A stretch of DNA of 64,000 nt from Chlorokybus atmophyticus (lineage: Eukaryota; Plantae; Mesostigma and Chlorokybus algae): the NCBI GenBank assembly GCA_009103225.1, contig RHPI01001553.1, positions 45,047-109,046 on the forward strand, in the 5' to 3' direction. Positions 8,491 to 56,377 of the stretch are shown piece by piece. Within the stretch, counting starts at the first letter, position 1, and each line of letters begins with the position of its first letter. The position numbers and the translations under genes are program-made. The notes beneath the pieces were generated by a model. It saw nothing but the letters and a program-made list of their open reading frames with translations. It had not been told where the DNA came from and did not search any database.

Positions 8491-9228
8491 CTAAGCCCGT
8501 TCAGACAGCGTCAGCCGACAGCAGCTTGCGAAGTTCGGGCCAGCTTGCAAAGTTCGGGCCGGCTGACAGTTTTCACATGCACTGCAAAAACTTAACTTGA
8601 CGTACTAACACTTCCGTGGTGGCGCCAGCTCTCACACGCCGACTACTGTACGGACAGGTAGGATTCGGCTTATCAAACTGGGAGCCGCCATACGAAGTTT
8701 TGATTATTAGTGTCCGGTAGCCGTTAGACGAAAGTTAGCAAATAACAATCAAACAATGGATATGACTACCGCGCAGAGGCCCTTGAAGGCCTGCAACGGC
8801 TATACTCCACGACTTCAAACGACAACCTGCCGCGCCCGCGGTGGAAAAACTCATACAAAGTTAACTCGGCAAAGTCCCCAAAGGCCGAATCACACCTGCT
8901 AGTACGGTAGCAGTTAGGCCCTAGCCCTAATTAACGTTACATAACCCTAACGCTAACCCTAACCCTAGTTGATCTGCCGCAAGCAGGAAACGTTGCATCC
9001 CCTGGCTTACGAATACCGCCCCGTTGACAATCCTTGACAATGGAATTAAGTACGTGTAGTTGTAGTGCCGCTCTTGGCACCTGGGAAGTGGAAGGGGGGC
9101 AGGCGGCCGACTACCCTGGCAGCAGAGACAAGCTCTGGCACCACGGCGTGCCGCAGCGGTGGTAGGCGAACAACTGCGGCAGGGCGACCACCTCTTCGGA
9201 TCGGATTAACACTTGCACGGGTGCGAAC

Positions 9229-10208
<980 letters not shown>

Positions 10209-11366
10209 NAACATGTATTGGTGCAGCTCTAGATTTGTAATTGAGTATTGATTGCAAGTAGTCGCAATACCTGCAGCTGCCAGCACTTGCCGTAGCTTTT
10301 CCAGTGGTTGTCTTTGCGTCTCCACAAGTACTCACGGATGTTGCCTTCATATGCCGCGGTCATGCTGTGTCAGAGGTCACCGCTGCTAGTGTCACTGCCG
10401 CAGAGTCTTACAATTACTGTGCAGCAATGCTGACGCACAACTGCGTGCTCGCAGTTCTTATCCCTGTATTATTTGCTTTGGGCCAACATTAACAACATTG
10501 TGGTGGAAGTTGGGACCGTCCACGCTGCGCATGCTTAAGAAGAATTCTCTCACATGCACACAGGCAACTGATTGAAGCTGGCCGCAGTAAGTACTGGTGT
10601 CTTCCATCTGTTCTGCATTCGCTTGACAATCTTGCTGCCAAGTATCGCATGTAGCCGTGCACAGTACTGTGACTAGTCTCCTTCTGCCACCTCATGACAA
10701 CCCATGTGATTGCACATGCAGATGGTGTTTGGTTGTGTGGCAACCCCGGCGATATGTACTATGCCGGCGCCGAGCATGCACATGCATAACCGAAATAGCT
10801 GCTACTTGGGACGACAAACCAAGCCTGCGGCTTGCGTTGGCATGCTTGAGCGCTGTCTGGAGACAGTGTCAGGACAAGGACGAACCAGCAACAGGAGGTT
10901 GCTTGCAAGGTAAGATTGGAAAGAGACAGCCAGTTCCAGCGGTGCACCGCGTGATAGCTTAGTTACACTGCAGTCGTTGGCCTTTCGGATCGGACAGTAC
11001 TCCAATCTTTGCGACGTTTCAGTAATTCATGTATTTGCGTTTACAACAGCATGCTTTGCAGCAATCAATGGGGCAGGCATTTGGTGTAGGTCTATGCGCA
11101 GACGCAAGTGACCCCTAGCTGCTGATTCACCGTGGTAGTCAGTCACTTTCCTCACTGAGTCATCAGATGTCGCTTGCCCAGTGGCTGTTTTCTCGACAGG
11201 TGTTTCACTGCTGCAGCTACGACTAGTGCGAGAGGGCCAGGTGCTGTTTATGCATCACTCGGCGCTGAGAGCGAGCGCACAGCACAGGTAGTACAGATGA
11301 AGCCTACTCTGCACTGCTTACAGGCGCAGGACACAACGAGTTCTGTGCCTTTGTTAGAAGCAACAC

Positions 11367-14300
11367 ATGTACATGGCTGACACTCTGCTGCTGCAGAGTC
11401 GTTTGCAGGAGGAGTGCGATTTCCAAACCTCTTGTCAAGTGTTCATCTGTCACAGGGGACCCGACACCAAACACAACATTGCAGATGCGCTGTACCATGA
11501 GCTCACAACAAAACACGGCTTGAAAGTCTTCCTTGATGCCCGCAACCTTCCCGCGACCGCCGGCGCGGACACTCCAGCAGCCATTCAGCAAGCGCTGCGA
11601 TCTGCGCCGGTTGGCGTCGCCATTCTGTCCAGCACCTTTTTTGACAGCAAAGATTGCGCTTCCGAGCTAAGAGACATGCTGGATGCTCGTGACCGCAAGC
11701 AAGGTTTTGTCTTTCTTCCCCTGTTCTTTCAGATAAAGGTGAATAAACTTTCAGTGAAGACACTGACCTCACGAAAGCGGCAGAAGTGGTACGATCAAGC
11801 TGAATCTAGAATAAAAAAGGAGGACCTGGCCAGCTACATTACAAGAGTCAAAGGTATTGTTGGAAAGGAGTACAACCCTGAGATGTGGAACACTGAGGAG
11901 ATTCCGCCCTTTGCTCTACACTTGCGCCGCCTTCTGCCGGTATGTTAGTGTCAACTGCTCATCATGAGCAGGTGCACAGGTATGTTTGACAGTCCGTTTC
12001 TAGACCAGCATTGATTGCTGTATGGGACGCAGGATGACCCCCACATATGCCTTGACAGTATACTGCCGAACTGGCTTGATCAGCTGCAGCGTCAGCGCAA
12101 AATGCTGTCATCCCCCGAGTCATCTCAGGGACGCATTGTTGGCCTTCTCTATGAGCACAGCAAGGAGCAGTTGGACTTGATGATACAGAGTCTGGAAGGA
12201 TTGAAGCAGCGTAGTGAAGACATCAAATCCAGCATGCGCCACATCAGCAGGAGCGGAGCCAACGGCCAAGGTATGTATGCTGCAATGTCAGCTGCCCTTC
12301 TTTGGGTCATTGCTATGGACATCTAGATCCTCGCATAGTTTGTTGTACTACTGCTATCGCTTCTTATGCTGCTAATGCGTGCGGTTCAGACTTGTCCGTA
12401 CTCTCCAGCATGGAGTGTTTGGAAATCGCATGTCGGGCAATTGTTTGGGTGGCGTGGGGCTGTGACATCGCTTGTGTTGCTGCTCTGGTGCTGCCGGCTG
12501 TCATCCATGGTCACCAGCGTGAGCGGCCGAATGAGTCCGTAGACAATGTGTTGAATAAGCTGACCCTCACACGGCCTTTGGCGAACAAACTGCGCGATGC
12601 AATGCAAGACTGGACGTATCCTCGGGTTTTGGGAGGAGCTGTACGGGGCATACTGTCTTCTCGAATTAACACAAGGGTTCAGGGTAAGTAGTAGTGAGAG
12701 CAGGCCCTGCTGCCCGTTGAACAGGGATTGTCCCATTGCAGAGATGCGCAGTGTCAGTGGTAGCGATCAGTCAGAACTGCACCGCATCACCCCATGCACA
12801 AAGCTTGCTGCATTCCGTGGACCACTTGTGCGCCTGCGGTCGACAGTCCCCAGCTGCAATCCTTGCTGTGTGTTTTACTGATTAAATGTCTGTGCCTTGC
12901 AGAGCTCTACATTGATTTGGCTAATGCAGTGATACAAGCAAACAACCATCTTGGCAAACCGGGGCTGCTGCCTCCCTTTGACCGTGCTGCAAAGGACACA
13001 GCTTTCAAAAAAGGGAACACGAGGTTGAAGGAGGTACTGGAAGCAGGGTTGCCAACAGACCAGCTGCAGCCTAGGCGTGCGGAGTGGCTACAGCAGTGGC
13101 AGGATGCTTTGCTGGTGGGTTTGCTTGACGAAGCCGCCTTGCAGACGTTAGCGAAAACGGCCGTGGAAGAGGTGTGGAGAGGATCCTGGAAGGTGGTGCG
13201 CGAGCCTGCAGAGCGAAGTAAGCAATATGCAGCTGAAGAAGCAGGCGACTTGGAGTCAGCAGTCATCACGAGAGATGATCAAGCTGAAGACGCTCCCAAC
13301 ATGCTGCTGGGTTCCGCTGCTAGCCAGAGCAACGTTGCAATTGCGCAATCTGAAGACAACAACGCAGATGGGCCGGTTGATACCCCTTCCACTGGGAAGC
13401 CTGTGGCGCATGAGACACAAGCCTCCTGGTCCGTTCTGGTCGAAGATGATCAAAACAAGCAACAACGGCGCATTGTCATTGAGGTGCCTGAAGTAGGCGC
13501 ACTCCCGGACGGTCTGGTTCGGGACTTGTGTGCCAACATGAAACGTGAGATGAAAGCCAAATCCGTCAGTGGGTACCCTGGCTCCCTTCTCGTGTTTGTA
13601 GACATGGAAACACCTGCATCAGAGTCGCTGGAGCGACTTGTGGAGAAGGTGCTGAGGAAGCCTGTGGCGCATGAGACACAAGCCTCCTGGTCAGTTCTGG
13701 GCGAAGATACTCCCAACAGGCAACAACGGCGCATTGTCATTGATGCGCCTGAAGTGGGCGAACTCCCGGACGGCCTGATGTTGGCGCTGCGTGCCCACAT
13801 TATAGGTCAGATGAAAGCCAAATCCGTCAGTGGGTACCCTGGCTCCCTTCTCGTGTTTATAGACGTGGAAACACCGGCATCAGAGTCGCTGGACCAACTT
13901 GTAGAGAAGGTGTTAGAGTGCTGGCATCAAGCAGTAGAAAGCGCTTGGCAGACTGTGGTGCGCTCTGTCATGCGCAAATATATGCCACAGGACTTCAAGC
14001 AGGACTTGAATTTGATGCAGCGATATACAGTGCAGCTTGGAGCCGAGCGTTTTGTCATTGTTGATGAAGGTTTGTCGCGGTGTCCTCGTGCACTGTGACA
14101 CCGCTGCCGATTGCTGTGCATGGCACATTCACTGCTGTTTGGTCCTTACAAGCGTTGTGCAAACCAGGTGGGGTTTTTTGTCAGATACTGACTCTTGAAG
14201 ATCAACCAAGGCTTGCTGGACAGATTGCTGTCAGTGGTGAGACCTTCTATGCATACATGCCGTCAACAGTTGGTTTGGTGGTCGTTTTCAGATCAAGTAA

Positions 14301-15861
14301 TGTATTGGCCGATCACTCCCTCCTGCAAATCATCCCTGTGTGCCTCTGCTCTGCAGTTGAATACGATGATGACGTATGTGACGGTATAAAGATAACGAAG
14401 GCCGCGGTGTGTTGGGGAGCAAACAGCACTGGATCATTTGCCCCGACCCTGTACTATAGGTTGCATGCAGAACGCAAGCTTGTTCAACTCGAACAGCGCC
14501 TCGAACCGTCAGATGGCATGGTACGTGCGGGCTACAGCTTCTTGAAATTGTTCAGGCACGTGCACCAATACTTGTGAATGTTCAAATCAAGTCCACAACA
14601 TATCTTCTGCATCTTGCCAATTACAAACAGCGGCCATGCATGCGTTATGTGAAGTGTGGTTGTAGCTGACGCTTGGCTTGCTATTTCCGAGGGCCCTGCT
14701 ACACTGAAGTGGAAAACCACATTGCCAGCAGAAGCCCTGAGGCTGGATGCATTTCTGGAAGCAACAAGGGATCAGCTGTGGGGCAATGCCATTAGCCTGT
14801 CGGTAAGTACATGCATGCACCTTGCAATTACGTTATGTGGACCGAGCTGGTGGCGTGATGGGTTGCTGCAGCAACCCAGACAGCTGTCTGAGCTCTTGAG
14901 TGCTGTTCAGCGCACGCATGGCAACACCTTTGAGAGCTTCAGTAGCAGCAATGAATCCTTATGTTATGCTGCGGCTGTGCAGGATGTACTCGCAAGTGTC
15001 CACGCACCAGAGGACGGGAGGGCAGCCAGTGGCGTTGGCTCACTGAGCACAGCCACTTTCAAATTGCAATGCTTTGTAACTGTGGCAGGCACGCTGAGAT
15101 TGTCCTGCAAGTTTAGTGGGACCGTGCCGGCTATTGTCTGGGAGCAGACTGAGCTGCGCGAGCTGTGGCTGGATGGCAATGGATTGGAAGAGCTGCCCTC
15201 AGGAGTGGGGAATTTGAGCAAACTGGAAAAGTTGGTGCTGAGCAACAACAATTTGAAAAGCATACCAAGAGAACTCGGTAACCTCAAAGAGCTTCGAGTG
15301 CTGCTGCTTGACGGCAACAAGCTCACTCACGTTGCCGGCATTGAGACGCTAACTGCCCTGGAAGAATTGGCATTACAGAAGAACAAATTCGCAAAGCTGC
15401 CGATCGAGGTTTGCATGCTCCAGGATCTGCAACGCCTGAACCTGCGCTGCAACTACTTGAAGGCGCTTCCTTTAGCCATCAAGGCGTTGAGCAAGTTGCG
15501 AGTTCTGAACCTTGATGACAACCGGTTAAGAGCACTGCCTAAGGAGATTCAGCACCTGACAGAGTTACAGGAGCTCAGTGTATTAAGGAATAAGCTCAAT
15601 CACTGGCAGTTCCCAGAGGTTGTTGTCACGTTGCTTCGTCTGAAGAAATTGCAGTTGGATGGCATATTCAATGCCAGATTCAACATATTTTGGGAAGGAC
15701 TAGATCGCCGGCTTCAGCAATGCCAGATTGCAAACAAACTGCAGGACAGTGACGGTACTGCCGCGGCTGCGAGCACATCAGCGCCCGAGACAGGCAAAGA
15801 GCTTGCAAACAGCAGCAGCGCAAATCAATTTGAAGGCCAATCAGTCCCCAGGGGCAGATGA
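11367..15861 (+). CDS. Multi-exon TIR ... LRR protein: TIR, helical/hydrophobic segment, 2 x 87-aa repeat, about 8 LRRs
   Basis: TIR exon: VFICHRGPDTK...KVFLD...GVAILSSTFFDSKDCASEL. Frame-preserving GT-AG introns at 11940-12032, about 12271-12326 and 12684-12741. LRR exon at about 15090-15660 (LxxLxLxxNxLxxLP, 22-23 aa period). Joining all exons into one gene is inferred; exons between 12.8 and 15.1 kb are not fully resolved. Confidence 0.7.
13395..13916 (+). repeat. Intragenic tandem duplication, 2 x 261 bp (87 aa)
   Basis: KPVAHETQASWSVL...RRIVI..PEVG.LPDGL...MKAKSVSGYPGSLLVF.D.ETPASESL..LVEKVL occurs twice in frame. Confidence 0.95.
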
Positions 15862-17542
15862 GACTTTCTCATGGGCCAGGGAGTTGCGGACCCAGTACCA
15901 GCTGCAAATCGAGGGGTGGTCATGACCAAAACAAGAAGCCATCAGGAGCAAGCAGCGTTCTTAGTCGCCCTAGTTTTGGCTGGGCATGCATGCCACATCA
16001 ATAACAATTAGCGCACCTCATGCAGCTGTTTCATGCCTCATCATGCGCATTGTGAGTAGCATACATGGTCACTCACAATGCGCATGAGTGTACAAAAGGG
16101 GTATGCTGCTGTGCCAACATGCATGGTGTGAAACATGCAAACAACATGCATGGTGTCAAGCACACCACACTCACTTGCACTCTTATTACAACAGTCACCA
16201 CCGGGCTATGTCTACCATCAGCGCGCTAACACTACCTGCCCCGTTAGACATGCATGCATAGCCAGGTTGATCACCTGCACAGCGGCTGTGGTCAGCGGCC
16301 ACAGCCTGTATATAAGAGATAGTATCCTACATTAGTAGCATGCAAGGTGTCACACACAAACATACGATGGCATGCATAGTGCAGCACACGGCACATGCAA
16401 TGGCAGGCTCACACTTCATTACATTTACTCACCACCGAACTGCTAACTCTACCTAACACTACCTGCCTACCCCGTCAGTCAATGCAGCATGCATGTCAGT
16501 CAATCACCTGCCCACAAGGGCTATATACACTTTCCCCACCGCGGTTTGTGCATATATAACAATTCATGTTGTTATGCGGCACGCGCGTGCATGATTACGA
16601 CGTGGCATAATTGAACACATCTTGCGTTTTGTAGCGTTAGCAATCACATATTATAGACCATATGAAGCATTGCTTCTGCTATAACATGGCTTGCGGACAC
16701 ATAGTTGTAAAACTCACGTGCAAGATTGGGACTGCAGCCCGCGGGTCCTGAGGCATGTCAGTACGCAATGCCCCAGCACTGCTATCAGTATACGCATGCG
16801 CCCATATGCGCGCGCGCAAGAGAGGGGGGAATCCCCCCCCCCTCCCTCCGGAGGGAGAAGAGGGGGGGTGTAACAGTCAAGGCCAAATTCTGTGATTTTC
16901 ATGGCCGTTTTAGGCCTTATTTGTAAGGTACATGTTTTTAATGACTTGTGGCGGATATCGGCGAGTTATGAGTCTGCCGCGGATATCGACCGGGGCCCCA
17001 AGACCAGTCCGGAAGGTGCCAGAAAACGGAGGGCCAGTCGAGAAGGGCTCGACCAGATTTCTGGAAGGGCCTGGCGCCAAGTAGTATAACTTGACCATAT
17101 GAGCAGCAAATTAGGAGATCTTTGGTGCGTTGGAAAGGTCTAGAAGTGTACTACAAGATTCTACAAGAATATCTTAGCTTCTAGTTCCGTCTAGCGCTAG
17201 AATCGTCTAGTCAGTAGCATGTGCAGACTGGTAGGTATAAAAGTGACATTCTACAACTTGCAATACAACCTTTAGCTCCCTAGTTTCTTGTGTGCAAGCT
17301 TGGTGGTGGCTAGCAGGGGTTGCTAGCGTGTGTCCACCGGTGTGTGCTTGCTTGTGTGACGATCCAAGGCGCTACACAAGTCGGTGTGTAGCTTCGAGCG
17401 CATGCGCGTGCGTACGCGAGTGGCGGGGCGCGCGTGTGTGCTTGGCAGAGGGGGCAAGGTTCCGGTGTGAATACCGTGTCTTGGTGAGAGGGTTGTGGAT
17501 TGGACCAACTCACAGGTGACAAGGCACGAGCACCGTCACAAC

Positions 17543-17634: not shown

Positions 17635-18663
17635 ATGGAGGATGCTCGCATGGAAGAGCTTCAAGCTGCCATCTTGGCACTGAGGGAAGAGCTTCATCAC
17701 ACTCAAGCGGCGGCACAAGCACAACGCGAGGCGTATGAGCATGCGATGGCGCGTGTATAAATTCCCATGGCATCAAGCTCGCGCGTGCATGTGAAGGTGC
17801 CAAAGCCCAAGCCCTTTAAGGGTCAACGTGATGGAGATGCAGTGGATGAATGGATTTTTCAAGTATCGTCTTGGTTGAAGCTCACGGAGGTGCCCACGCA
17901 TCTGCACGTGGAGGTTGCAGCGACATTGCTTGAAGGTGCAGCACTTGTGTGGTGGAGGCATCGATGTACGCGTGTTGCAAACGGGTTGGCGCTACCATTG
18001 ACCACCATGGAAGAGTTGGCACTGGAGGTCAGGCATCAATTTGTTCCCGTTGAGAGCGTGAAGGCCGCACGCGACAAACTTGCAGCCCTTGTGCAAATGG
18101 GGTCGGTGATGGCGTACACGGCCGCATTTCAGCGATTGGTGATGTCCATACCCAATATGACCGAGGAGGAGCAGTTGGACAGGTATACACGTGGTTTGAA
18201 ACCTTTGGGGCGTAAAGAAGTGGAGCTACGGGACCCGAAGACACTCGTGGAGGCTATACGCATCGCGGAGCGTCTCGACGCGTTGTACTTCAAATCCACC
18301 ACAAGAAACACTGACTGGAGGCAAAGGCATGGTGATCAGCCCCGGGGAGGCTTTTAACATGCATGGAGACGAGGAGAACCAAGTTCAGCACTTGCCAATG
18401 GAGGTGGAGCTGACTCTGGGCCTGCACCAATGGAGGTGGGTGCCATACACACGCATGGAAGTGAGGCGAAGCACGGCGGACGTGGTGAAAGAGGTAAAGG
18501 TGTGCGCAAGTGTTATGCGTGTGGGTCGACGGAGCATTTGGCGTACGGATGCCCCAAACGAAGCACGCAAAGGCCAACACCGGATGGCAACCCTCGCCGT
18601 GATCGTCGCGTCAACACCATGGAGCAAAATGGCGTGGAGCAGGAAAACGACTTCCCCCAGTAG
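17635..18663 (+). pseudogene. Chromovirus gag with two in-frame TAA stops
   Basis: One reading frame from ATG 17635 with TAA at 17758-17760 and 18355-18357. Retrotrans_gag-like core (PKPFKG..DAVDEWIFQV, LEGAALVWW) and zinc knuckle CYACGSTEHLAYGC. Confidence 0.9.
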
Positions 18664-18716
18664 GTGAGGAGGCTACTGCTGGGGATAGGAAGGAGCCTCA
18701 TGCACGGACGGATGCT

Positions 18717-21700
18717 GTGACATTTCCATTAAAGAAGCAAGAGGAGATGGCTTTGAACGCGCCAATGGTGGTGAGTTATGCAAACGAGGAGACAACAAAG
18801 TACTTCGGGCTTCGAGCACACATTTGCGATGACCAAGGACGATGGAGAGAGTGTAAGCTCATGATTGATAGCGGTGCCAACAGCAACTTCATGAGTATTG
18901 ATATCGCGCGGCGTTACGGTTGGCTTTCGTCATTACGAGGAGGTGAAGTGAAGCTCGCTGATGGAGAGCCACCCTCTGGAGGTGATGGCGCTGCGTTTAT
19001 GACCAAAGAGTTGTGCGTTCGCATTGGGAAGATGAAGGAGAGCATGCGGTTTTGCTGCATCACCTTACGGAACAGGTTTGATGGGATTTTGGGACTACCG
19101 TGGCTATGGCAACATAATCCAGCCATCAATTGGAGGAAGCGCGTGCTCACCATCGAGCGAAACGGTGGAGAGTCCATTCAAGCTGCATCGGACGTCATCG
19201 AGGCGCGGCACGCACAATTAGGTGGTACGACAATTGCCCAGATCTCTCATGTGCAATTGAGGAAGTTATTGTCTCCACGGAAGGCAAAGGCTGCATGGTT
19301 GTGCGTGGTGCGCGAAAACACTGCAAAGTCAGCACCAGAGCTGAGTGACGATGTTCAGACGGCAACTATGGACCCCGAGGTGTGTAAACTTGTTAAAGAA
19401 TACCAAGATACCATGGTGGACGGACTTCCATCTGGTCTACCACCTCCACGGAGCGTAGACCACCGTGTGGAGCTGATGGAGGGCGTGCACAAGCCACCGT
19501 ATCGACCCGTATACAAGTTGTCACCTTTGGAACTGGAAGAGGCCGAGAGGCAGGTGGCGGACTTGCTGGAAAGAGGCTACATCAGGCCTAGTAAGTCCCC
19601 CTATGGTGCACCTATTTTGTTTGTACGAAAGAAGAACGGGAGCTTGCGCATGTGCGTCGACTACCGAGCTCTCAACAACATCACGAAGAGAAATTGCTTT
19701 CCACTCCCACGAATCGACGAGTTGCTGGAGCAATTGCAAGGTGCGCAGTACTTCACAACACTTGATCTTGCTGGAGGTTATCACCAAATTCGCATCGCGC
19801 CCGAGGATGTGGAGAAAACAGCCTTTAACACACGTTATGGGCACTACGAGTGGTTGGTCATGTCCTTCGGACTTACGAACGCACCGGCAACATTTCAAAC
19901 GCTTATGAACAGCGTTTTTGCTGACTTGATTGGTAAGGGAGTCCTCGTGTACCTCGACGACATTTTGGTGTACGCGACAACAAAGGAGGAGCACGTGGCA
20001 CTTCTACGGCGCGTGTTGCAGCGTTTGCGCGAACACAAGTTGTACGCCCAGCTACAAAAGTGCAAATTCTTGCTTCGAGAGGTGGAGTACCTAGGCCACA
20101 TTGTGTCGCATGAAGGCATCAAGCCGGACCCCAACAAAGTGCAGGTGGTGCGCGAGTGGGCTGCCCCGACCAATGTAAAGGAGGTGATGTCCTTTTTAGG
20201 CCTTGCGGGGTATTATCGCAAGTTTATCATGGGGTTTTCGCGCATAGCTGCTCCCTTGACTACCCTACTCAAGAAGGGAAAGCATTGGAGCTGGTCAGCA
20301 ACAGAGGAACATGCATTTGCTGCGTTGAAGAAGGCGCTGACGGAGGCACCAGTCCTGGCTCACCCCAACATGGAAAAGACATTTATTTTGGCTTGCGACG
20401 CGTCCGACACAGCCGTAGGAGCTGTTTTGCAGCAAGACCATGGCAACGGCCTTCAACCAGTAGCATTCTTCAGCAAAAAGATGAGTGGTGCGGAGCTGAA
20501 TTACCCCGTGCACGAGAAGGAACTTTTAGCGCAAGTCATGGCGCTACGACAATGGCGTTGTTTTCTGGAAGGCAAAAAGTTCGTGCTTGAGACGGATCAC
20601 TCTCCACTGAGGTACTTACAAACACAACCTCATCTGAGTCGCAGACAAGCTCGATGGCTTGAGTTCTTTCAACTTTTTGACTTCGATATCAAGTACAAGC
20701 CCGGTACGTCAAATGGTGTTGCTGACGCGCTGAGCCGGCTTAATGCAATTGAGGCACTCGCTCAAGTGCAGCCCGAGTGGACCGACCAGATTCGGCAAGT
20801 GCTTCGTGAAGACACGGAGGGTATGAAAGTGTTGCAAGAGCTGGAAAATACAGCTACGGACACAAGTGGGCACTGGTCAATGCGCGACGGGCTGCTGTGG
20901 CACCATGGGCGCTTGTACATCCCCAACGTCGCGCATATCCGTGTGAAGTTGCTGAAGGAAGCTCATGACGTGCCCATTGCTGGTCACCAAGGGTTGGAAA
21001 GGACTTTGGCAAGCTTAAAACAGCGTTTTTACTGGCGAGAGATGCATCGCGATGTGCGCGACTACGTGGCGTTGTGCGACGCATGCCAAAGGGTGAAGGC
21101 AAGCAACCAAAAGCCAGGTGGGTTGCTGCAACCTCTCCCTGTGCCATTGTCCAAGTGGGAGCAAGTTACCATGGACTTTATCACGGGGCTACCAAAGACA
21201 AAAGAAGGGTACGACGCTATACTTGTGTTCGTCGATAAAACCAGCAAAATGGTACGCTTGGCACCGTGTAGTGAGTCTTGCACGGCACCGGAGGCAGCAC
21301 GCTTGTTCGTGAAGCATGTATTTCGTTCTCATGGATTACCACGAAGCATTGTGAGTGATCGCGACCCGCGCTTTACAAGTAAGTTTTGGGAGGCGCTGCA
21401 TAGTGCACTGGGTACCACACTGAAGTTTAGCACGGCATTCCACCCGCAAACTGATGGGCAAACGGAGCGGGCCAACCGTGTGATCGAGGACATGCTGCGT
21501 TGCTACGTTAACGCGCGACAAGACAATTGGGAGGAGCTGCTTGAGTTGGTTGAGTTTGCGATCAACAACCACCACAATGCAAGCACAGGTGTCACTCCCT
21601 TCCTTATGAACTACGGGCAACATCCATTGACACCGTTGACGGCATGGACACCGCGACGACATGACGTGCGTGTGGAGGCAGCTAATGACTTCCTTACAAA

Positions 21701-22250
21701 GTGCGCGGACATTAACAAGGCAGCTAGGGATGCGTTATTGGTGGCACAAAATCGGCAGAAGCAGTACGCGGACGCGCATCGCCGACACCTCACGTTTCAG
21801 GAAGGCGACATTGTGTTACTCTCCGCGAAGCACGTCCAGGTGCGTACGGGAGTTCGCAAGCTGAATGAACGCTGGTTGGGACCATTTAAGGTCAGCAAAG
21901 TTATCTCGGACGTGGCGTACAAGTTGGAGCTACCCGACACCATGCGTGTGCACCCCGTTTTTCACGTCTCCCTTCTGAAAGCATATCGAGGAGAACCGCC
22001 AGAAAGGCCACCCCCCGAAGTTGGCACAAATGGTGCACCCGAGTGGGAGGTAGAAGACATCCTTGGTGAGAAGTTTGTGCATGGCGTACGCAAGTTCTTA
22101 AAGAAATGGAAGGGCTATCCGTTGCATGAAGCATCCTGGGAGCCAGAGGCACACTTGACTAATGCTCAAGACGTTGTACGTGCCTACCTTGCTCGACGAC
22201 ACCCTCGCGAGCTTCGAGGACGAAGCTCACCTGGGGGGGGAGGAGTGTAA
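18717..22250 (+). CDS. Chromovirus pol: protease, RT, RNase H, integrase, chromodomain (uninterrupted)
   Basis: IDSGA, CVDYRALN, YLDDIL, LACDASD, HHCC zinc finger, TMDFI / SDRD / GQTERAN, GPF, and chromodomain WEVEDILG..FLKKWKGYPLHEASWEPEAHL. Confidence 0.97.
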   Translation: MTFPLKKQEEMALNAPMVVSYANEETTKYFGLRAHICDDQGRWRECKLMIDSGANSNFMSIDIARRYGWLSSLRGGEVKLADGEPPSGGDGAAFMTKELCVRIGKMKESMRFCCITLRNRFDGILGLPWLWQHNPAINWRKRVLTIERNGGESIQAASDVIEARHAQLGGTTIAQISHVQLRKLLSPRKAKAAWLCVVRENTAKSAPELSDDVQTATMDPEVCKLVKEYQDTMVDGLPSGLPPPRSVDHRVELMEGVHKPPYRPVYKLSPLELEEAERQVADLLERGYIRPSKSPYGAPILFVRKKNGSLRMCVDYRALNNITKRNCFPLPRIDELLEQLQGAQYFTTLDLAGGYHQIRIAPEDVEKTAFNTRYGHYEWLVMSFGLTNAPATFQTLMNSVFADLIGKGVLVYLDDILVYATTKEEHVALLRRVLQRLREHKLYAQLQKCKFLLREVEYLGHIVSHEGIKPDPNKVQVVREWAAPTNVKEVMSFLGLAGYYRKFIMGFSRIAAPLTTLLKKGKHWSWSATEEHAFAALKKALTEAPVLAHPNMEKTFILACDASDTAVGAVLQQDHGNGLQPVAFFSKKMSGAELNYPVHEKELLAQVMALRQWRCFLEGKKFVLETDHSPLRYLQTQPHLSRRQARWLEFFQLFDFDIKYKPGTSNGVADALSRLNAIEALAQVQPEWTDQIRQVLREDTEGMKVLQELENTATDTSGHWSMRDGLLWHHGRLYIPNVAHIRVKLLKEAHDVPIAGHQGLERTLASLKQRFYWREMHRDVRDYVALCDACQRVKASNQKPGGLLQPLPVPLSKWEQVTMDFITGLPKTKEGYDAILVFVDKTSKMVRLAPCSESCTAPEAARLFVKHVFRSHGLPRSIVSDRDPRFTSKFWEALHSALGTTLKFSTAFHPQTDGQTERANRVIEDMLRCYVNARQDNWEELLELVEFAINNHHNASTGVTPFLMNYGQHPLTPLTAWTPRRHDVRVEAANDFLTKCADINKAARDALLVAQNRQKQYADAHRRHLTFQEGDIVLLSAKHVQVRTGVRKLNERWLGPFKVSKVISDVAYKLELPDTMRVHPVFHVSLLKAYRGEPPERPPPEVGTNGAPEWEVEDILGEKFVHGVRKFLKKWKGYPLHEASWEPEAHLTNAQDVVRAYLARRHPRELRGRSSPGGGGV

Positions 22251-23682: not shown

Positions 23683-25796
23683 TGCATACTGCCGCGCAGC
23701 AACCACTGCAGCTTAGAGTTGTAAGTAACGCTCACAAGGAGCTTACCAAGCAACGCAATGCTTTTGGATACCAACAGCAACAGCATTCGTTGTACCCACA
23801 CATGGGCATAGTCGCAACAAGCGTATGCAATCGCAAGCTGAGCGCCAGTAACAGCCTATTGCCGTAGTGCAAGGCTTGTAAGATTTCCAGTACCATATTG
23901 CTACTTGGGTGCAATGCACGGGTGCACTCACCTGTTCTGCATTCAAGCTTACGGCCAGCTTGAAATCAATCAAAGGCAGTGACATGGCCCTGCGCACTAG
24001 CGAAGCAAGCATGAGCACATACGGCACTACACTGGTAATGCGACCACTATCATAGAGCAGCGTCAAGCCTTGAGGCGTGTATGGCATACACGACGTGCAC
24101 TGGCTGCTGGTTTTGACAAGCTGCTTAACGCATGCGACCTTCAGGCGCCTTGACAGCTTGCACGAGCTCAAGCTACCCTTGTCATGCGCAACAACACATA
24201 CATGCCAGGTCGCTATTTGCACTTGGTTTTGGCACTGGACTTGACGGCTGCTGCAACAACATTGCTATCGTCGTGACCAGATGGTTCAACCACCTTAACC
24301 CATGCACAGACACAAATGGTTGCTAACAACCCCACATGCAAATCCGCAATCGCACCCAGACAGACAGCTGGACGAAACGCCAAGCTGGATGCATGCCAGT
24401 TTGAGGATGAGAATCGTGGAAGAAAGAGTGGAAGCGGCGGAAGGTGACCTATTATGCAGCGGTGCTGGCAGCCACCAGCACTGGTGATGACGACAACCTC
24501 ACGGGCGAAGACAACGTTGCCGCCGCCTCCCTGAGACAAGCTGCTTGGTTCTGAACACCGAAGGACGTGTACTAAAACTTTCCCAGGTGATTTGCATTTG
24601 CATATTTAGGCGGGCTGCCTCATGCCTTCTTGCTGCTGGTAGAATGCACACAATGCAGCAGCTTTGCACGTGGTAGCTGCCCGAGCGAAGTGTCAAGCAG
24701 AAGCATAAGCACTAACAACACACAACCCTAGCATTGACTTTTTGATTTTTTTTGTGTGTGTGAATCCGATGAGCTGGTCGATCAGCTAGAAATATGATGA
24801 ATGATGAAAGTGAAGAAAGTGAGCCGCAGCCGAGTCTCTGACCAACAGGCCGAGCAAGCTCCTGGGTGGGCGGCGGCGGCGGCACGTCGAGCGGCTCGCG
24901 TGACGCATGGAGGTGCCGCTCGCTGTTCTGGACGTCATGTTGGGGTAGTCTGCGTGCTGACTGTGGGCGGCGGCGTCGCCGTCCAGGCTGGTCTCCGCTT
25001 TGGCACGGCCTGGCAGGTACGCAGGATGCGGATGCGGTGCCTTTTACTGTCTGCACTGTTGTAGGGGTATACAGAAGTATAGTGCAAAACACTAGGATCA
25101 CATTCGTCTAGTAGTACACCTCAGCTCCAGGTAATTGTGAACGACACTCTCAGACTTGGTTGAAGCACCACACAGCACACGCGAGCAGCTGCATGTACCC
25201 AGGACATGCAACTAGCCGCAGCTGTGCTCACTGCTATTATGATTCTGGTGCTGAACATGACAGTCACATATATCTGCCGCGATAACTACCATTGGAAGGC
25301 ACCAGCAGCTATGACAAGTTTTAAGGCACTTGTATACTACAGGTCAGTGGTGGTAACCATTGACCTGGCGTCCTGGTGGCATGCGTGTAAAGCTGCATGC
25401 GTATAGACCTGTGTGTGCGGGACATGGGTGAATTGGGATTGGTAGCGTACGCGTGCAGCGCTTAAGGTCTATGTCAATGGTTGTGTTCGTATTATGTTGA
25501 AGGGTGCAGCGTCTTCCAACATGCTACTACTTGTTATTGCGTGAGTGTCCTGCTGTGATCCTGTTGCCAACAGATAATATACATGCAGTTGATAGCACCT
25601 TTACACACAACCATGCTCAATGCTGTGCAGCTGTGATGTGTTTGCTTTGCGCATGCATCATGTCACAGCACTGCACAAACGTTGTACTTGCTCCCCCCCA
25701 TGGTACAGCGTGCCAAGTAAGCCAACCATTGTTTTGTCTACAGGGCAGGCGCTGGGAGAGCTGCAGTGACATATATGTGACTTGCAGCTCTCCAGC

Positions 25797-26615
25797 ATGG
25801 CGGACTCCATCAGCATTCTCGGCGCTGTTTTAGGTGCGCTCGGATTTGCCCTTTCGCTGGTCACTCTATGGTTTGGCCGCCGCGACCGCAAGCTGGAGTT
25901 GATGTGGCAGTTGAACACGCAGTACACGAAAGAAATGATGCAGGCCTTGTCGACAATCACTTGCTACAAGGGTAGTCACTGTGATTACTATGAAAAGTTC
26001 AGAGATGGCCGAGCCCAGTCGCAAGAGGCAAAGGATGAGATTCAACAAGTTGAAGACGCCCGACGCTTGCTGGCAGGGTTTTGGGACTGGGTGACAGATG
26101 TTCATGACAGCGGATCATTCCCTGTTGGGTTCCTGTCTTCAAGGAGCAGCACATGGCTGCAGCGTGGCAACAACTATCGCGTAGCTGTTGAACCCTTTGA
26201 CGTTGCGAACTGGTATAGGCACTTCTTCCCGACAGAAAACAAGCATTACCTCCGCGACAACCCAGCAGACAGCTGTACCCGGCCAAGACGGTACTACCTC
26301 CTGCAAGAGTTGTACAGCCAGGTGTACAATCGCAAAGGTGAGACGGTGAAGAGTTCGCTTGATGAAGCCTGGACAGAGCTTCGCACTACCTATGTCCCAC
26401 CTGCAGCAGCGCAAGGAGACGCCCCTGATGGCCCTACAGCAGTGCAACAAGCTGGTGCGCATAGTGCCCTAGTTGTGGAACCTGTCGACCCTACAGCACA
26501 TCTAGCCAATGCGCACAGCCTCAGCAGTCACAACCGTCAGCCTATGAGGCTGCGCTTGCTGGATTACTTCAACCAAGTAAAGATAGCGGTGCGGCAATTG
26601 GTTGGTAGCCTTTAA
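25797..26615 (+). CDS. Intronless N-terminally membrane-anchored protein (about 272 aa), DUF4760-like architecture, function unknown
   Basis: Hydrophobic ISILGAVLGALGFALSLVTLWFG followed by RRDRK, then a helical domain (DARRLLAGFWDWV...VEPFDVANW). A conserved paralogue at 33.1-33.8 kb, including the upstream CTACAG/TTACAG acceptor, supports coding. Confidence 0.8.
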   Translation: MADSISILGAVLGALGFALSLVTLWFGRRDRKLELMWQLNTQYTKEMMQALSTITCYKGSHCDYYEKFRDGRAQSQEAKDEIQQVEDARRLLAGFWDWVTDVHDSGSFPVGFLSSRSSTWLQRGNNYRVAVEPFDVANWYRHFFPTENKHYLRDNPADSCTRPRRYYLLQELYSQVYNRKGETVKSSLDEAWTELRTTYVPPAAAQGDAPDGPTAVQQAGAHSALVVEPVDPTAHLANAHSLSSHNRQPMRLRLLDYFNQVKIAVRQLVGSL

Positions 26616-32499: not shown

Positions 32500-33077
32500 G
32501 CGCTTGTAGAATTCTCCTTGAAAGCTTGTTTGAAGTCCAGTCCAGCTTCCTTGTTGGCTGTGAGATTGAGGGAGGGTTATGTGTGTCGGGGCGTCAGCGA
32601 ATGTTGGTGGTTGTGCGTGTGGGGCGAGTGTGGAAGCGCTGCATGCACGTTTGGTCAAGTGTCTGAGCAAGTAATAGTTGTTGGGGAGCACGTGCAAGAT
32701 GTGTATAGCGCGGGATTGCATGTGTGACCACAAGGTAGGGACTGAATCTGCATATGCGGTTGTCTATATTAACTTCAAGAGTGCTGCATTTACAACATTG
32801 CACGTATTACTATTGTGCGGGTGTCCTGTTGTAGTTGTAGTTCCCCTGGCCAGTTGGCCAAACGTTGCTAATAGTCCACAGCACCCTTACACAAAACCTT
32901 GCTCCATGCTTTGCAGTGCACTCATGGGTTTGTAATGTGCGTGTCATCATGTCACAGAAATGTACACAAAGAAAAACAGTCTGCTCGCTTGCGTGGATGC
33001 AGCCATGCCACTAAGCCAAGTCCATTCCTTACAGGGCAGCGCTGGGAGAGCTGTAGCAGTCATTGACAGCATCCACC

Positions 33078-33756
33078 CTGGCGGACTCCATCAGCATTCT
33101 CGGCGCTGTGTTAGATGCGCTCGGCTTTGCTCTTTTGCTGGTTACTATATGGTTTGGCCGGCGCGACCGCAAGCTGAAGTTGATGTGGCGGTTGCACACG
33201 CGATATACAAAAGAAATGATGCAGGCCATGTCGACCATTACTCGCTGAAAGTTATTATGAGGAGTTCAAAGCTGGCAGAGCCCTGCCTCAAGCTGCAGAT
33301 AGTGACATCCAGCAAGTTGAAGACGCCCGACGCTTGCTGGCAGGGTTTTGGGACTGGGTGACAGATGTTTATGACAGCGGATCATTCCCTATTGGGTTTC
33401 TGTCTTCGAGGAGAAGCACGTGGCTATCACGTGGCAACAACTACCACGTGACTGTGGAACCATTTGACATTGCTAACTGGTATGCGCGCTTTCACGCGCA
33501 AGAGGTCCTTAAGCATTACCTCCGCAACAACGCAGCAGGCGAGTGTCCCCGTCCAAGACGGTACTACCTCCTGCAAGAGCTGCATCGCCAAGTGTACAAT
33601 TGTAAGGATGACAAGAAAATGCAGAGCTCGCTCGTTGACGCTTGGGAAGAGCTTTACGGTACCCAGCCTACCCCAGAGCAAGTGGCTAGTGCGCATAGCC
33701 TCAGCAGCGACTATGGTCAGCCATTGAAGCTTCGCGTATTGGATAACCTTACCTAG
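33078..33756 (+). pseudogene. Disrupted paralogue of the 25.8-kb membrane-anchored protein
   Basis: CTG replaces ATG (CTG GCG GAC TCC ATC AGC ATT), and a frameshifting deletion lies near 33245. Otherwise highly similar: LLAGFWDWVTDVYDSGSFPIGFLSSR, CPRPRRYYLLQEL. Confidence 0.85.
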
Positions 33757-34687: not shown

Positions 34688-37600
34688 CTATCTCCCTGTC
34701 TGTCTTTGAGGGTCGGCGTGGTCGGCTGCGTCTTCGTCTTCATCTTCGTCATCGTCTCCGTCTTCGTCATCGACATTGTCATCGTCATCGTCATCATCGC
34801 CATCGCCATCGCCATCGTCTTCATTGTTGTTGCCCTGCCTCTGCAGCATTGCCAGCGCCCGTGTCTGCAGCAGGGCCTCGGCATCGCCATACTTACCCTG
34901 TTGCTGCAGCGCAAAGCCCAAGTTGTTGAGGGTTGTCATGGTGCCGGGGTGGTGTGGCCCCAGCTGCGTTTCGCAGATCGCTAACGCTTGTCTATACAAT
35001 GCCTCGGCCTTGTCATATTTTCCCTGCTTCTGTAGAAACGCTGCCAGGTTGTTGAGTATCATTGCAACGTCAGGGTGGTCCGGCCCCATATTCGCTTTGA
35101 TGATCACCAGCGCCTGTCTGCTCAATGCCTCAGCCTCGCTGTACTCACCCTGCGCGTGCAACACAGATGCCAGGTTGCTGAAAGCGAGTGCGGTGTCGGG
35201 GTGCTCTGGCCCCAACTTTGCTTCGCGGATCGCCACCGCCCGTCTGTGTAGGTCCTCGGCCTTGCGGTGCTCACCCTGCTCTTGCAGCACGAGTGCCAGG
35301 TTGTTGAGGGCTGTTGCGGTGCCGGGGTGGTGTGGCCCCAACTTTACTTCGCTGATCCCCAGCGCCCGTCTGTTTAGATCCTCCGCTTTGCTGTACTCGC
35401 CCTGCACTTGCATCACCGCTGCCAGCATGGTGAGGGAGCTCCCGGTGTCCGGGTGATCTGGACCCAACTTTGTTTCCCGTATCGCCAGCGCCTCTCTGCT
35501 CATTGCCTCAGCCTCGCCATACTCACCATGCTTCTGCAGCAAAATTGCCATGTTGTTAAGGGACGACGCGAGGTCGAGGTGGTCCGGCCCCAGCTTCGCT
35601 TTGTAGATTGACAATGCTCGTCTATGAAAAGCCTTGGCCTTGCCATATTTGCCCTGCTTGCCCATCACATATGCCAGGTTGCCGCAACTTGTCGCGGTGC
35701 TGAGGTGGTCCGGCCCCACCAACATTTCTGTAGCCGTCAGCGCCTGTCTGAGCAGGGTCTCGGCCTCGCCATACTTACCCTGTTCTTGCACCACGAGTGC
35801 CAGATTGTTGAGGATAAGCACGGTTTGGACGTGGTTCCGCCCCAGCCTCGCTTCACTACTCGCCAGCGCCAGTTTGTACAGGGCCTCAGCCTCAACGTAC
35901 TTGGCCTCGATTCGGAAGCAATTGCAGTACAAAAGCCACAGGCGGAGCCAACGTGATGAGTCTTGCGGTTCAACCCGCTGCAACACGCGTTCGCAGCTGT
36001 CCAACATTCTTGAAGCCTGTGCTGTCTGATAGAGACCAACATAGAACTCCGCCAATGCCAGTGCGACGTCGTTGACTTGCAGCAAGTCGCCATCATCCAG
36101 TGGAACCCTGACACCGCTAGGGTCATCAACCTCCGGAAGCGCCATGGACACTGCATACGCAACGTGTTCTGCGTCTTGTCCAACCTCGCCCACCTCAGCG
36201 ATGGCCATGATGGCAGCCTGGGCGACCTGGATACCCTCTTTCTTCCCCTCCCATCTGCCAAAACTCTGTACCAGAGGGTGGAAAGCTGTACCTCCGTCCC
36301 GTGTGCGCTCGGCTAGTGCGTACTCTACAAGCAATCCCGATGCAGTCTCGACATCGTCGTTGCAATAGTCCATTGCCGACAAGTTGACAGCAGCATGTTT
36401 TAGTAGTTCTGATCGTATAGGAACTGTAGCGAACCATCCACCCAACCATAGAAGCTTTCTGGCCAGATCGGCCACCTCCACCACCTCCGCCTCGCAATTG
36501 TCTGTGACCATCATAGTCAGACTTGTAAGAAACAGAGTCGTCAACCGCGAACTCTTTTGAAAATCGGGGTCGTCCGGCACTCTCAAAGACTTCTACTACC
36601 TCTTTTGTTCTCAGCTTTGTCAAAAGCCACTCCGGACCGTGCCTACCCTTGAACATCAGTCTAGCAGAAACTGCTAGGGATAAAGCGTGGCACCCTAGAG
36701 CCACAGCCAGCTCTTTGGCCCTCTCCTTGGGTGTCTCAGGCGACAGCCATGATTTCAGCAACTCACATGCAGCCGCCTCTTCAAGATCCTTCAACTCCAG
36801 GACATGAAGGTTGCCAGGCATTCGCTGACGAGCAGTCAGTATGACATGGCAAGGTCCTTCCTTCGGTAGGTATTTCACATACTGCTCCTCATCGTCCACG
36901 TTGTCCAACACCAGAAGACAAGGGGTCTCCGACTGTTCCAGTGCTGTCCGAATCTCCGCAACAATGTCTCGGTCTTTCTCCTGATTGGGCCGCAAAATAC
37001 TTGGGAGCCACGACCTGTGTGTAACATTGTTGATCAGCTTTACCTGCAATTCCAAGACAAGCAGGGAGTATTAGTACAGCTGCAAAAGAAAGCCAGCAGA
37101 GGCTCTTACTTTATTTTCTCAACGCCTGTCTCGATACCCAGTGGCTTTGCCAACCCCAGGAAACTACTGTGCAACGCCTCTTTGCTTGCATCAATCCAGA
37201 GCAGCTTGTCGTATTGGTTTCTGTGGCTATACACGTACTTCAGTACCAGCTGCGTCTTGCCAGCACCCCCCATGCCTTGGATGCAGACGCGGCCGCATTC
37301 ATTTTTGAGCATGTTCTCCAGCTGCGTCAACTCTGCGCTTCTTCCAACAAAGTGCTTGTTGTCATGGAACGGCATCATGTTGACTCTCTTCCCTGTGGTG
37401 CACGGTCGTTCAAGCCGCTTGCAAACATCTTGGACGATGGCACGGGCATAGGTGTCCTCGTAGCCGTCATACTTCTTGATGCTCTTCATGCATATGCTTG
37501 CAAGGTCTTGAACCGACTGCATCCAGTCCGCTTCATTCATGTTGCAATCTGTCCACAACTGCCCCCCGTGTTGCTCCCAGACTGTGCCTGCTGAGATCAA

Positions 37601-38022
37601 GAAGAGAGACAGTTGATTGTCATGGATGTGAGACAGAGGATCCGACATCTGCATTCCAAATATCAGCACTGTTGCAATGTACCTTTCTTGTTCTTGATCT
37701 TCTCTGCATCAATATCCGTAGGGGTAACCTCAAAGCAGACTGGCAAACAGTTTTTCCGGTCCAAGAATGTGCGGAGCTCTTGCATGCACCATTGGCTGGC
37801 AAAGAACCCCGGAGTCAGCACCACAATGCCGCATGTTGCCTTCTGCATGGCTGAGTCCATCATCTCAGGCGAATGATCTCCCAGTTGCAATGACCTATCG
37901 TCGAAGAACACCCGTAGCTTCTGCCTCTCGAGCTCGTTCTTGAGCCATACGCCAAAACCCCTTTTGATGTCTGGACCGCGATGAGACAGAAAGACGTCGT
38001 AATGTTTATCTTGACCAGCCAT
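34688..38022 (-). CDS. TIR - NB-ARC/STAND - TPR (TNP-type) protein with acidic tail; at least one frame disruption
   Basis: TIR YDVFLSHRGPD...SQWCMQEL; intron 37588-37682; P-loop GMGGAGKT; Walker B LLVLDNVDD; HVILTAR; LGCHALSL. Eight 42-aa GP(D/H)HP..LNNLA..QGKY TPR repeats and a D/E-rich tail. A frameshift lies near 36590 and the splice phase near 37050-37105 is unresolved. Confidence 0.9.
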
Positions 38023-55196: not shown

Positions 55197-56377
55197 ATGG
55201 TGGAGCTGTTTGGTGAAATTGTGGGCTTGCGGCCGCGTTGATTGCCGGCATCAAGGTGCGGCGCTACGTCTATGTGAACCCTTCGCCAACGGCACAACAA
55301 GGTGCACAACATCATGTGAGGATTTTGTTGAAGAAGTATCTGGATCTGCTACATAAGGGTGCGGTGAAGGGTTTTCAAAACACATGGCCGCAAGACATTT
55401 GCTTGGTGGGGCCACATCATCTCGTGGCAATCGGCCATGTGGATTTGCTTGTAGCGGGGTGGGAATGCCAAGGGCATTCACGGGCTGGTCATGGCAAGGG
55501 ATTGATGGATGCGCGCTCGTCATTGTTTTGGGAGTTGGTGCGCGTCATCAACATGATTCAGCAAGGCCAAGAGCAGCCCATGGCGTACGTCACTGAGAAC
55601 GTACCAGCTGAAGACGACAAGCGCAAGCGCGTGCGAGAGGACTATCAGCTGGTGAGACATGTGCTAGGTCATGAGCTGGTCATGGATGCCGCACGTCATG
55701 GTTCGCGCGCGCATCGGCTGCGTGTGAAGTGGACAAACCTCGCGTCGGTTGAGTTGCTTCGCACGGTGCAGCAAGAGTACTCTAGACCGCAAGGTTTGAC
55801 AGTCAACCAAGTGCTGGAGCATGGGCGCACAGCACAACAGGTCAACAAGGCTGATCGGCCGCCTCAAGAGGTGGTGAACCAGGTTGGGCACGACATGGCG
55901 GCCTTGCCGACATTGGTAACATACCCAGGCTCTTATGCATTCCGCAAGGGAGGGCCAGGGCTGGTGTGGGACTCACGAAAAAGCAGGTTGAAAGAGCCAA
56001 CAGCTGGTGAGCGCGAGCGTGCGATGGGGTTCTTGTCCGGTGCAACAGCGGCGCCAGGACTGAGTGAACAACAGCGCCGAGTGCTGCTAGGACAAGACAT
56101 GGACCAGAATAGCATGGTGTGGCTTATGGTTGTTTGCTTGGCGGCACAATTGGTGGCAAGCATCATGCCGATGCAACAGCAAGCGCGTCAAGAGCCTGCG
56201 CCTCTGTCGAGGGGGTGGGAGCATGATGTACAGCATGAGGAGAGTAAGGGGGTGTCTTTTTCGCCTGTGACAGCTGCAAGTGGCAAGAAAGCGGCTGTGG
56301 ATGGTGCCTTGAAGCAGGAGAAGGCCACCGACCAGACCATGGAGTGGTGTATAGGCGAGAAAGACAACGCAGCTTAG
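55197..56377 (+). pseudogene. C5 cytosine DNA methyltransferase domain within retrotransposon pol
   Basis: Motif I-like VELFG (55200, followed by a frameshift). Motif IV DLLVAGWECQGHSRAG (Cys at 55466-55468), then GLMDARSSLF. Motif VI ENV (55595-55603), motif VIII HRLR, motif X-like LLGQDMD. Confidence 0.9.

Follow-up and report, generated by a model that had tools for sequence, protein, structure and literature searches.

A lineage-restricted, expressed TIR-X-LRR protein without a detectable STAND switch in the green alga Chlorokybus atmophyticus

Known immune receptors that combine a TIR domain with leucine-rich repeats (LRRs) either carry a STAND ATPase, as in the NLRs, or span the membrane with the LRRs outside, as in the Toll-like receptors (TLRs). 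A further class of plant proteins, TIR-X and TIR-only (the TX class, including RBA1-type proteins), has a TIR without a STAND module in the chain, and its members are mostly short. Self-association or induced proximity activates the TIR enzymes of plants and bacteria, and TIR-only proteins function without an NTPase. Here we describe a gene of the early-branching green alga Chlorokybus atmophyticus that encodes a lineage-restricted, expressed, non-STAND TIR-X-LRR protein. It lies on the + strand of a 64-kb stretch of DNA, hereafter the window, to which all positions refer. The chain comprises, in order, a basic N-terminal extension, the TIR domain, ~280 helical residues with one hydrophobic helix, an acidic linker, two tandem modules, a beta-rich segment and 8–9 LRRs. 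The gene is real, expressed and single-copy in C. atmophyticus, while the mechanism of its product is something we can only infer.

The Chlorokybus protein resembles the plant TIR-NB-LRR receptors (TNLs; flax L6, RPP1, ROQ1, RPS4) in its N-terminal plant-type TIR with the glutamate of the C-x-x-E-L motif, in its C-terminal LRRs and in the clustering of its gene with a canonical TIR-NB-ARC gene. Unlike the TNLs, it has no NB-ARC, and ~730 orphan residues stand in place of the switch; its LRRs are of the 22–23-residue SHOC2/LRRD1 type and no Pfam domain follows them. Judged from its sequence, it falls outside the TNL definition for want of an NB-ARC. Like the TLRs, it pairs a TIR with LRRs and has no NTPase, and a hydrophobic segment between the two may be a further point in common. 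Nevertheless, the order is reversed (TIR N-terminal), signal peptide and LRR Cys caps are missing and the TIR belongs to the enzymatic type found in plants. The reversed order and missing signal peptide place it outside the TLR definition too.

The TX class, in which the TIR is likewise followed by non-NB sequence, is the only descriptive class that fits, as a matter of architecture and not of common descent. In contrast to TX proteins, the Chlorokybus protein is 1,246 aa long and ends in a full LRR arc, and no sequence relationship was found outside the TIR. The nearest functional analogy, by design, is with PIDD1/LRRD1, animal LRR plus death-fold proteins that also combine SHOC2-type LRRs with a signalling domain, with tandem modules between and no NTPase. 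There the domain order is the opposite, and the TIR of the Chlorokybus protein takes the place of the death domain. Pfam detected neither ZU5 nor UPA nor a death domain in the whole protein at E ≤ 10. The similarity to LRRD1 is of the generic kind seen among repeats and does not speak for a shared ancestry of the proteins as wholes.

Surveys have recorded the TIR-LRR combination from two bacteria and from a small number of conifer transcripts, as domain counts only (PMC7145615, PMC6691002). These cases likewise have both Pfam domains in one chain without an NB domain and are set beside the Chlorokybus protein by domain counts; those from conifers may be truncated TNLs. A 2017 review reported TIR-LRR combinations to be absent from algae (PMC5350094). 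The gene is not named in the literature searched, where TIR-LRR is mentioned in surveys for bacteria and conifers alone. Its gene model, Chrsp231S03545, is already public.

The window is eukaryotic in character, with GT-AG introns, a G+C content of ~52% and many retrotransposons. Six large open reading frames (ORFs) on the + strand at 10.7–15.9 kb include TIR and LRR matches, with nothing recognisable to Pfam between them. Three public RNA runs (X1, X2 and X3) from two studies, each containing 56–70% of the sampled words of the stretch, served as the transcript basis, and their contigs were mapped on 10900–16400. Eight GT..AG joints were present in the transcript contigs, all of them common to X1 and X2 (two studies) and most also seen in X3; contigs carrying such joints derive from spliced RNA. 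An otherwise unattached 5' contig end had a unique placement at 10878–10907, adding an upstream exon and a ninth intron. This first intron would occupy 10910–11199, as placed from the mapped 5' contig end.

The resulting model has 10 exons with AG/GT borders throughout and one frame open over 1,246 codons (3,741 nt). The coding sequence runs from the ATG at 10722 to the stop codon at 15859–15861, with a second in-frame ATG at 10716. An in-frame TGA (10707–10709) closes the reading frame just 5' of the first ATG, and therefore no further N-terminal domain or signal peptide is to be expected unless the leader is spliced. A transcript contig reaches ~445 nt 5' of position 11198, and the leader (10465–10715) holds several upstream ATGs. 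Some 250 nt upstream of this contig's 5' end, a (GA)n microsatellite of ~1 kb (about 9200–10208) ends at a single N (10209). The 3' untranslated region extends to about 16025, contigs ending at 15984–16025. The original prediction had started the gene at an ATG at 11367; that codon lies inside the intron 11288–11396, and the coding sequence begins 645 nt upstream, with two further exons. Translated exon by exon from the ATG at 10722, the model is identical to Chrsp231S03545 (1,246 aa), an independent public prediction for C. atmophyticus, also listed as JGI Chlat1/3545 and EukProt EP00898_P002827 and the sole member of its own 90% cluster. This public protein was the reference for the analyses of the whole protein and of its sub-ranges.

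One contig joins the 5' leader and the N-extension exon to the TIR exon and on to exon 4, as far as 13424. A second starts at 13829 and carries every downstream exon, including the LRRs, into the 3' untranslated region. The gap between them (13424–13829) is covered by two 176-nt contigs and by continuous depth, and exon 4 is open throughout as one exon. The contig break coincides exactly with a 2 x 261-nt repeat, as is expected because short-read assemblers collapse repeats. The TIR and LRR parts very probably lie on a single mRNA. GT..AG joints from two studies, an open frame and an identical public prediction thus bear out the original assignment of TIR and LRR to a single gene, one that is expressed.

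Coding exon 1 (10722..10909), defined by the 5' contig end and the frame, corresponds to residues 1–63 of the public protein. Coding exon 2 (11200..11287; joint 11284/11394 in X1 and X2) adds residues about 64–92 of the N-terminal extension. The extension comprises 92 residues in total and is basic and Cys-containing, without a signal-peptide-like segment; the N-terminus is not hydrophobic (Kyte–Doolittle 1.28).

The TIR exon (11397..11939, residues 93–273) was recognised by Pfam (TIR_2 8e-16, TIR 2e-12) and by PDB sequence matches, and the region also matches PADLOC TIR families. Flax L6/L7 were the closest PDB sequences (1e-08), followed by AT1G72930, RPV1, RUN1, ROQ1 and RPS4, which points to a plant-type TIR. 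The motif FICHRGPDT at residue 108 is aligned with FLSFRGPDT of plant TIRs. Likewise, SKDCASEL is aligned with SKWCLMEL, so that Glu182 (codon 11664–11666) coincides with the CLMEL Glu of the flax L6 and L7 TIR structures. In flax L6 this Glu is the residue that we take to be catalytic. By alignment, Glu182 occupies the catalytic (NADase) position, in agreement with the intact NADase-type Glu first noticed in CASEL at 11664. A word-based search with the TIR region among long proteins returned the protein itself only. Within the window, the nearest TIR is that of a neighbouring TIR-NB-ARC-TPR gene, to which it is 32% identical.

No STAND or other P-loop NTPase is detectable between the TIR and the LRRs, whether by motif, profiles, comparison with the neighbouring gene or predicted secondary structure. 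Walker A (G/AxxxxGK[ST]) is absent from every forward frame of 10400–15900, as had been noted at the outset. No NB-ARC, AAA or STAND family was found at E ≤ 10 by Pfam, NCBIfam or PADLOC in the whole protein or its middle, so the profile search for a divergent P-loop NTPase, which the original prediction had named as a possible refutation, came back empty. A decayed NB-ARC was considered for the middle and rejected, there being no similarity to the NB-ARC of the neighbouring gene. The middle might still conceal a P-loop NTPase, STAND or other, that has diverged strongly, and the protein would then be a degenerate TIR-NB-LRR receptor. In its TIR...LRR order and in having a middle of about 730 residues, the protein does resemble a TNL, and canonical TIR-NB-ARC genes occur in the same genome, one of them in the window. 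Against this stand the negative motif, profile and neighbour comparisons and the secondary structure of residues 270–560, predicted as all-helical in a low-confidence model and counted against an NTPase. Moreover, the sole alpha/beta part consists of the tandem 87-residue modules, which are without a Gly-rich loop. We regard a hidden NTPase as highly improbable.

The middle begins with a helical, coiled-coil-like exon (12033..12270, residues 274–352), delimited by joints; its helical nature, anticipated from the sequence, is seen in the low-confidence AlphaFold model only. An exon with a hydrophobic segment follows (12390..12683). The large exon 4 (12903..14069, residues 452–839; 388 open codons) encodes a helical part (452–555), an acidic, probably disordered linker (556–614), modules A and B and a set of helices (789–839). 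Three small exons come next. The first (14168..14236, residues about 840–862, within the beta-rich region) is supported by joints in X1, X2 and X3 and by the frame. The second (14357..14520, residues about 863–917, also beta-rich) is supported by joints, frame and strands in the low-confidence model, and the third (14692..14802, residues 918–954) by joints and frame. A separate contig of X3 keeps the intron 14521–14691.

Module A (nt 13394–13654, residues 615–701) and module B (nt 13655–13915, residues 702–788) form an internal repeat of 87 residues each (2 x 261 nt at 13394–13915), 88% identical in nucleotide and 76% in amino-acid sequence. The duplicated 87-aa module of the original prediction therefore exists as described. 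The KAKSVSGYPGSLLVF block is invariant between the two, and the differences are concentrated in the first helix and one loop. Neither a third degenerate copy nor any further internal repeat was found in the protein. In X3, a contig at 13395–13912 runs from a copy-B-like module end (6 differences) through a natural 4-nt spacer, CTGA, into a module start; this contig may reflect a third module copy, homogenisation of copy A in that strain, or else an assembly loop.

Two single-sequence AlphaFold models were made of the middle (residues 270–560 and 610–1010), with a mean predicted local distance difference test (pLDDT) score of 41 in both. At this low confidence, residues 270–560 are all-helical with twelve helices, each 87-residue module is a small alpha/beta sandwich of the order beta-beta-alpha-beta-beta-alpha, and a beta-rich stretch covers about 840–930. 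Foldseek against the PDB, a wide VIA-align search and an ESM-Atlas shape search on these models gave noise-level rows only. The low-confidence module model shows a noise-level resemblance to generic ferredoxin-like or ACT-like sandwiches, in which ACT may serve as a lead. For the 87-residue module there was no SEA or TRADD-N match in Pfam (E ≤ 10) and no PDB profile match. The fold searches being at noise level, no ACT, SEA or TRADD-N fold is claimed.

Sequence searches of the middle were equally negative. Residues 274–1009 (roughly 730 residues) matched nothing in Pfam, NCBIfam or PADLOC at E ≤ 1 to 10, whether searched as exons, whole protein or sub-ranges, and PDB sequence and profile searches with the middle gave no match. 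An exhaustive phmmer search with exon 4 against 1.84 billion representative proteins returned one match, the protein itself (100% identical over the exon). Word-based homologue searches found none for exon 4 and self only for residues 276–960, and two ESM-Atlas feature searches for the middle gave no usable match. A hidden EDS1-type EP domain in the helical part was also considered; it was rejected, with no Pfam EDS1_EP match and a BLASTP E of 2.5 against an EP-like ORF of the window (25782–26612).

The last coding exon (14983..15861, residues 955–1246), assigned by Pfam and PDB matches, encodes a pre-LRR segment, the LRRs and a low-complexity tail. The LRRs extend over residues about 1012–1172 (nt about 15154–15720) and consist of 8–9 repeats of 22–23 residues with the pattern LxxLxLxxNxLxxLP, seven of them regular with flanking ones. 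The initial count of about 8 repeats is in line with this, and the Pfam matches are strong (LRR_14 1.2e-23, LRR_8 2.6e-20). Among PDB sequences the best matches were LRRD1 (4e-64) and SHOC2 (4e-53), while most plant ectodomain LRR kinases matched less well (GSO1 5e-51, FLS2 3e-38). The flanks of the LRRs are not Cys-capped, and no Pfam domain was reported C-terminal to them. These similarities assign the LRRs to the cytosolic SHOC2/LRRD1 type.

Two hydrophobic Cys-rich stretches had been predicted in the middle. One of these, IVCCTTAIASYAANAC (12329–12376), lies inside the intron 12271–12389 and is not in the protein. The other, AIVWVAWGCDIACVAALVLPAVI, is exonic (nt 12437–12505) and, as residues 369–391 (23 residues), is the sole strongly hydrophobic segment of the protein. 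Its Kyte–Doolittle 19-residue mean is 2.19, above the usual transmembrane threshold of 1.6, and its Wimley–White octanol energy is a favorable -3.9 kcal/mol. The segment has a central Asp and flank charges of -1/-1, with no positive-inside or other orientation signal. AlphaFold splits it, at low confidence, into two helices with a break at WG/CD. On the octanol scale, one of the TIR domain's buried beta-strands comes close to the value of this segment (-3.35). Residues 369–391 are hence ambiguous, a candidate membrane segment or a buried helix.

If this segment were a single-pass signal-anchor helix, the protein would be an inverted Toll-like receptor, with the TIR cytosolic and the modules, beta-rich part and LRRs outside; the LRRs would sense an extracellular ligand, and clustering would activate the TIR across the membrane. 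Besides the hydropathy and octanol values, the five Cys around residues 369–391, as at many acylated membrane anchors, would agree with such a topology, as would the hydrophobic helix at the start of the neighbouring EP-like ORF. It is opposed by the central Asp, the uninformative flanks, the comparable TIR strand and the predicted break. The LRRs, moreover, are far closer to cytosolic LRRD1/SHOC2 than to plant ectodomain LRR kinases (4e-64 versus 5e-51 to 1e-38), and their flanks are without Cys caps. The 855 residues after the hydrophobic segment contain only 4 N-x-S/T sequons and few Cys. We consider an inverted receptor unlikely; cytosolic-type LRRs, few sequons and missing Cys caps favour, by sequence character, a cytosolic or peripherally attached protein. 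The initial idea that a membrane-embedded or otherwise non-STAND module controls the TIR therefore survives only insofar as no STAND is detectable. One proposed membrane stretch is intronic, the other is ambiguous and the LRRs are of cytosolic type, and control of the TIR by the middle is not supported as stated.

Taken as a whole, the locus is best explained, with somewhat better than even probability, as encoding a non-STAND TIR-X-LRR intracellular sensor whose TIR is switched by induced proximity. The protein would act inside the cell, possibly in association with a membrane. We read it as intracellular because of the in-frame stop 5' of the start, the missing signal peptide, LRRs nearest to cytosolic LRRD1/SHOC2 and the few sequons and Cys. 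The LRR arc may bind a ligand or a guarded host protein. At rest, the lineage-specific middle would keep the TIR domains apart; upon binding, it would join them through its helical, coiled-coil-like part, and the TIR could then cleave NAD+ or produce nucleotide signals. The switch would thus be induced proximity rather than nucleotide exchange. Possible readers of the signals are the EDS1-EP-like genes 10–18 kb downstream.

Several observations weigh against this explanation. No contig or long read covers the full transcript, and the 3' contig is ~3-fold deeper than the 5' contig (117 versus 349 in X1; 29 versus 99 in X2, 5' value first), a step that could come from 3' bias or from an extra internal start with a TIR-less isoform. 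The models of the middle, at a mean pLDDT of 41, are of low confidence. The ratio of nonsynonymous to synonymous substitution rates (dN/dS) between modules A and B is 0.76, indicating weak constraint, and a middle without any homologue means that conservation cannot support function. Finally, AIVWVAWGCDIACVAALVLPAVI exceeds the classical transmembrane thresholds, and a membrane span there would place the LRRs outside the cell.

The same dN/dS value, with the recent in-frame internal duplication from which it was obtained, would also suit an evolutionary by-product, in which captured or newly arisen sequence linked a TIR exon to an LRR exon within an immune gene cluster that is rich in transposons and turns over fast, giving a gene that is transcribed and open but without a selected sensor function. 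The orphan middle, with exon 4 matching only itself, the self-only results of the word-based searches of the middle and TIR region, and the retrotransposons on both flanks are consistent with such an origin. Nevertheless, 1,246 codons are open across nine correctly spliced introns, expression is seen in runs of two studies, and neither the catalytic Glu nor the RGPDT motif has been lost. At just 32% identity to the nearest TIR in the window, the TIR is not a very recent copy, and the orphan status may reflect the near-absence of sequenced Chlorokybus relatives. A by-product of this kind appears improbable to us.

A bolder version of the sensor reading, which we hold to be distinctly doubtful, would see here a class of receptors distinct from both NLRs and TLRs, with an enzymatic plant-type TIR switched by a non-NTPase module. 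The protein would be either an inverted TLR with a Cys-rich membrane helix or a sensor in the cytosol that takes up a small molecule with its tandem ACT-like sandwiches, and in either form it would feed nucleotide signals to adjacent membrane-anchored EP-domain proteins.

If the intracellular-sensor explanation is true, more arrangements of TIR with LRR were tried before the TNL design became fixed in land plants, and the protein would be a natural test case for TIR activation by nothing more than induced proximity. Lying next to EP-like genes and a TIR-NB-ARC-TPR gene, the gene also offers a data point on the reading of TIR signals outside seed plants. It is a singleton from a single lineage that has been poorly sampled, which limits the value of the case.

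The gene sits in an immune-type cluster, with two EDS1-EP-like ORFs and the TIR-NB-ARC-TPR gene within 30 kb. The first EP-like ORF (25782–26615, +; 277 aa), ~10 kb downstream of the TIR-X-LRR gene, matches the EDS1-type EP family of Pfam (PF18117, E 1.2e-11, 45 bits versus a cutoff of 23). It has a hydrophobic helix, MADSISILGAVLGALGFALSLVTLWF, from an ATG a few codons in, and is without the lipase part. A second EP-like piece (33334–33756, +; EDS1_EP 6.6e-9) is closely similar to the first and is preceded by an ORF in another frame (32960–33361, +), which suggests that the region 32960–33756 is a frameshifted copy or contains an intron. Just upstream of it lies an assembly gap (a run of N at about 31.8–32.2 kb).

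The TIR-NB-ARC-TPR gene (34688–38022) is a canonical STAND gene on the - strand. Its TIR lies at 37663–38022 (TIR_2 4e-19), followed by NB-ARC pieces with the P-loop region (37106–37669 and 36195–37055) and a long TPR_10/TPR_12 array (34688–36586).

Ty3/gypsy elements lie on both sides of the TIR-X-LRR gene (1–2599 and 17767–22250). The first includes a pol in which the integrase is followed by a PHD finger (1283–2599), and the second is a full gypsy element with a chromodomain. Further retroelement stretches, including copia gag and pol pieces, were found at 47296–48270, 55238–56377 and 61601–63871, and the ORF at 55238–56377 also showed a match to C-5 cytosine methyltransferase (E 1.5e-9).

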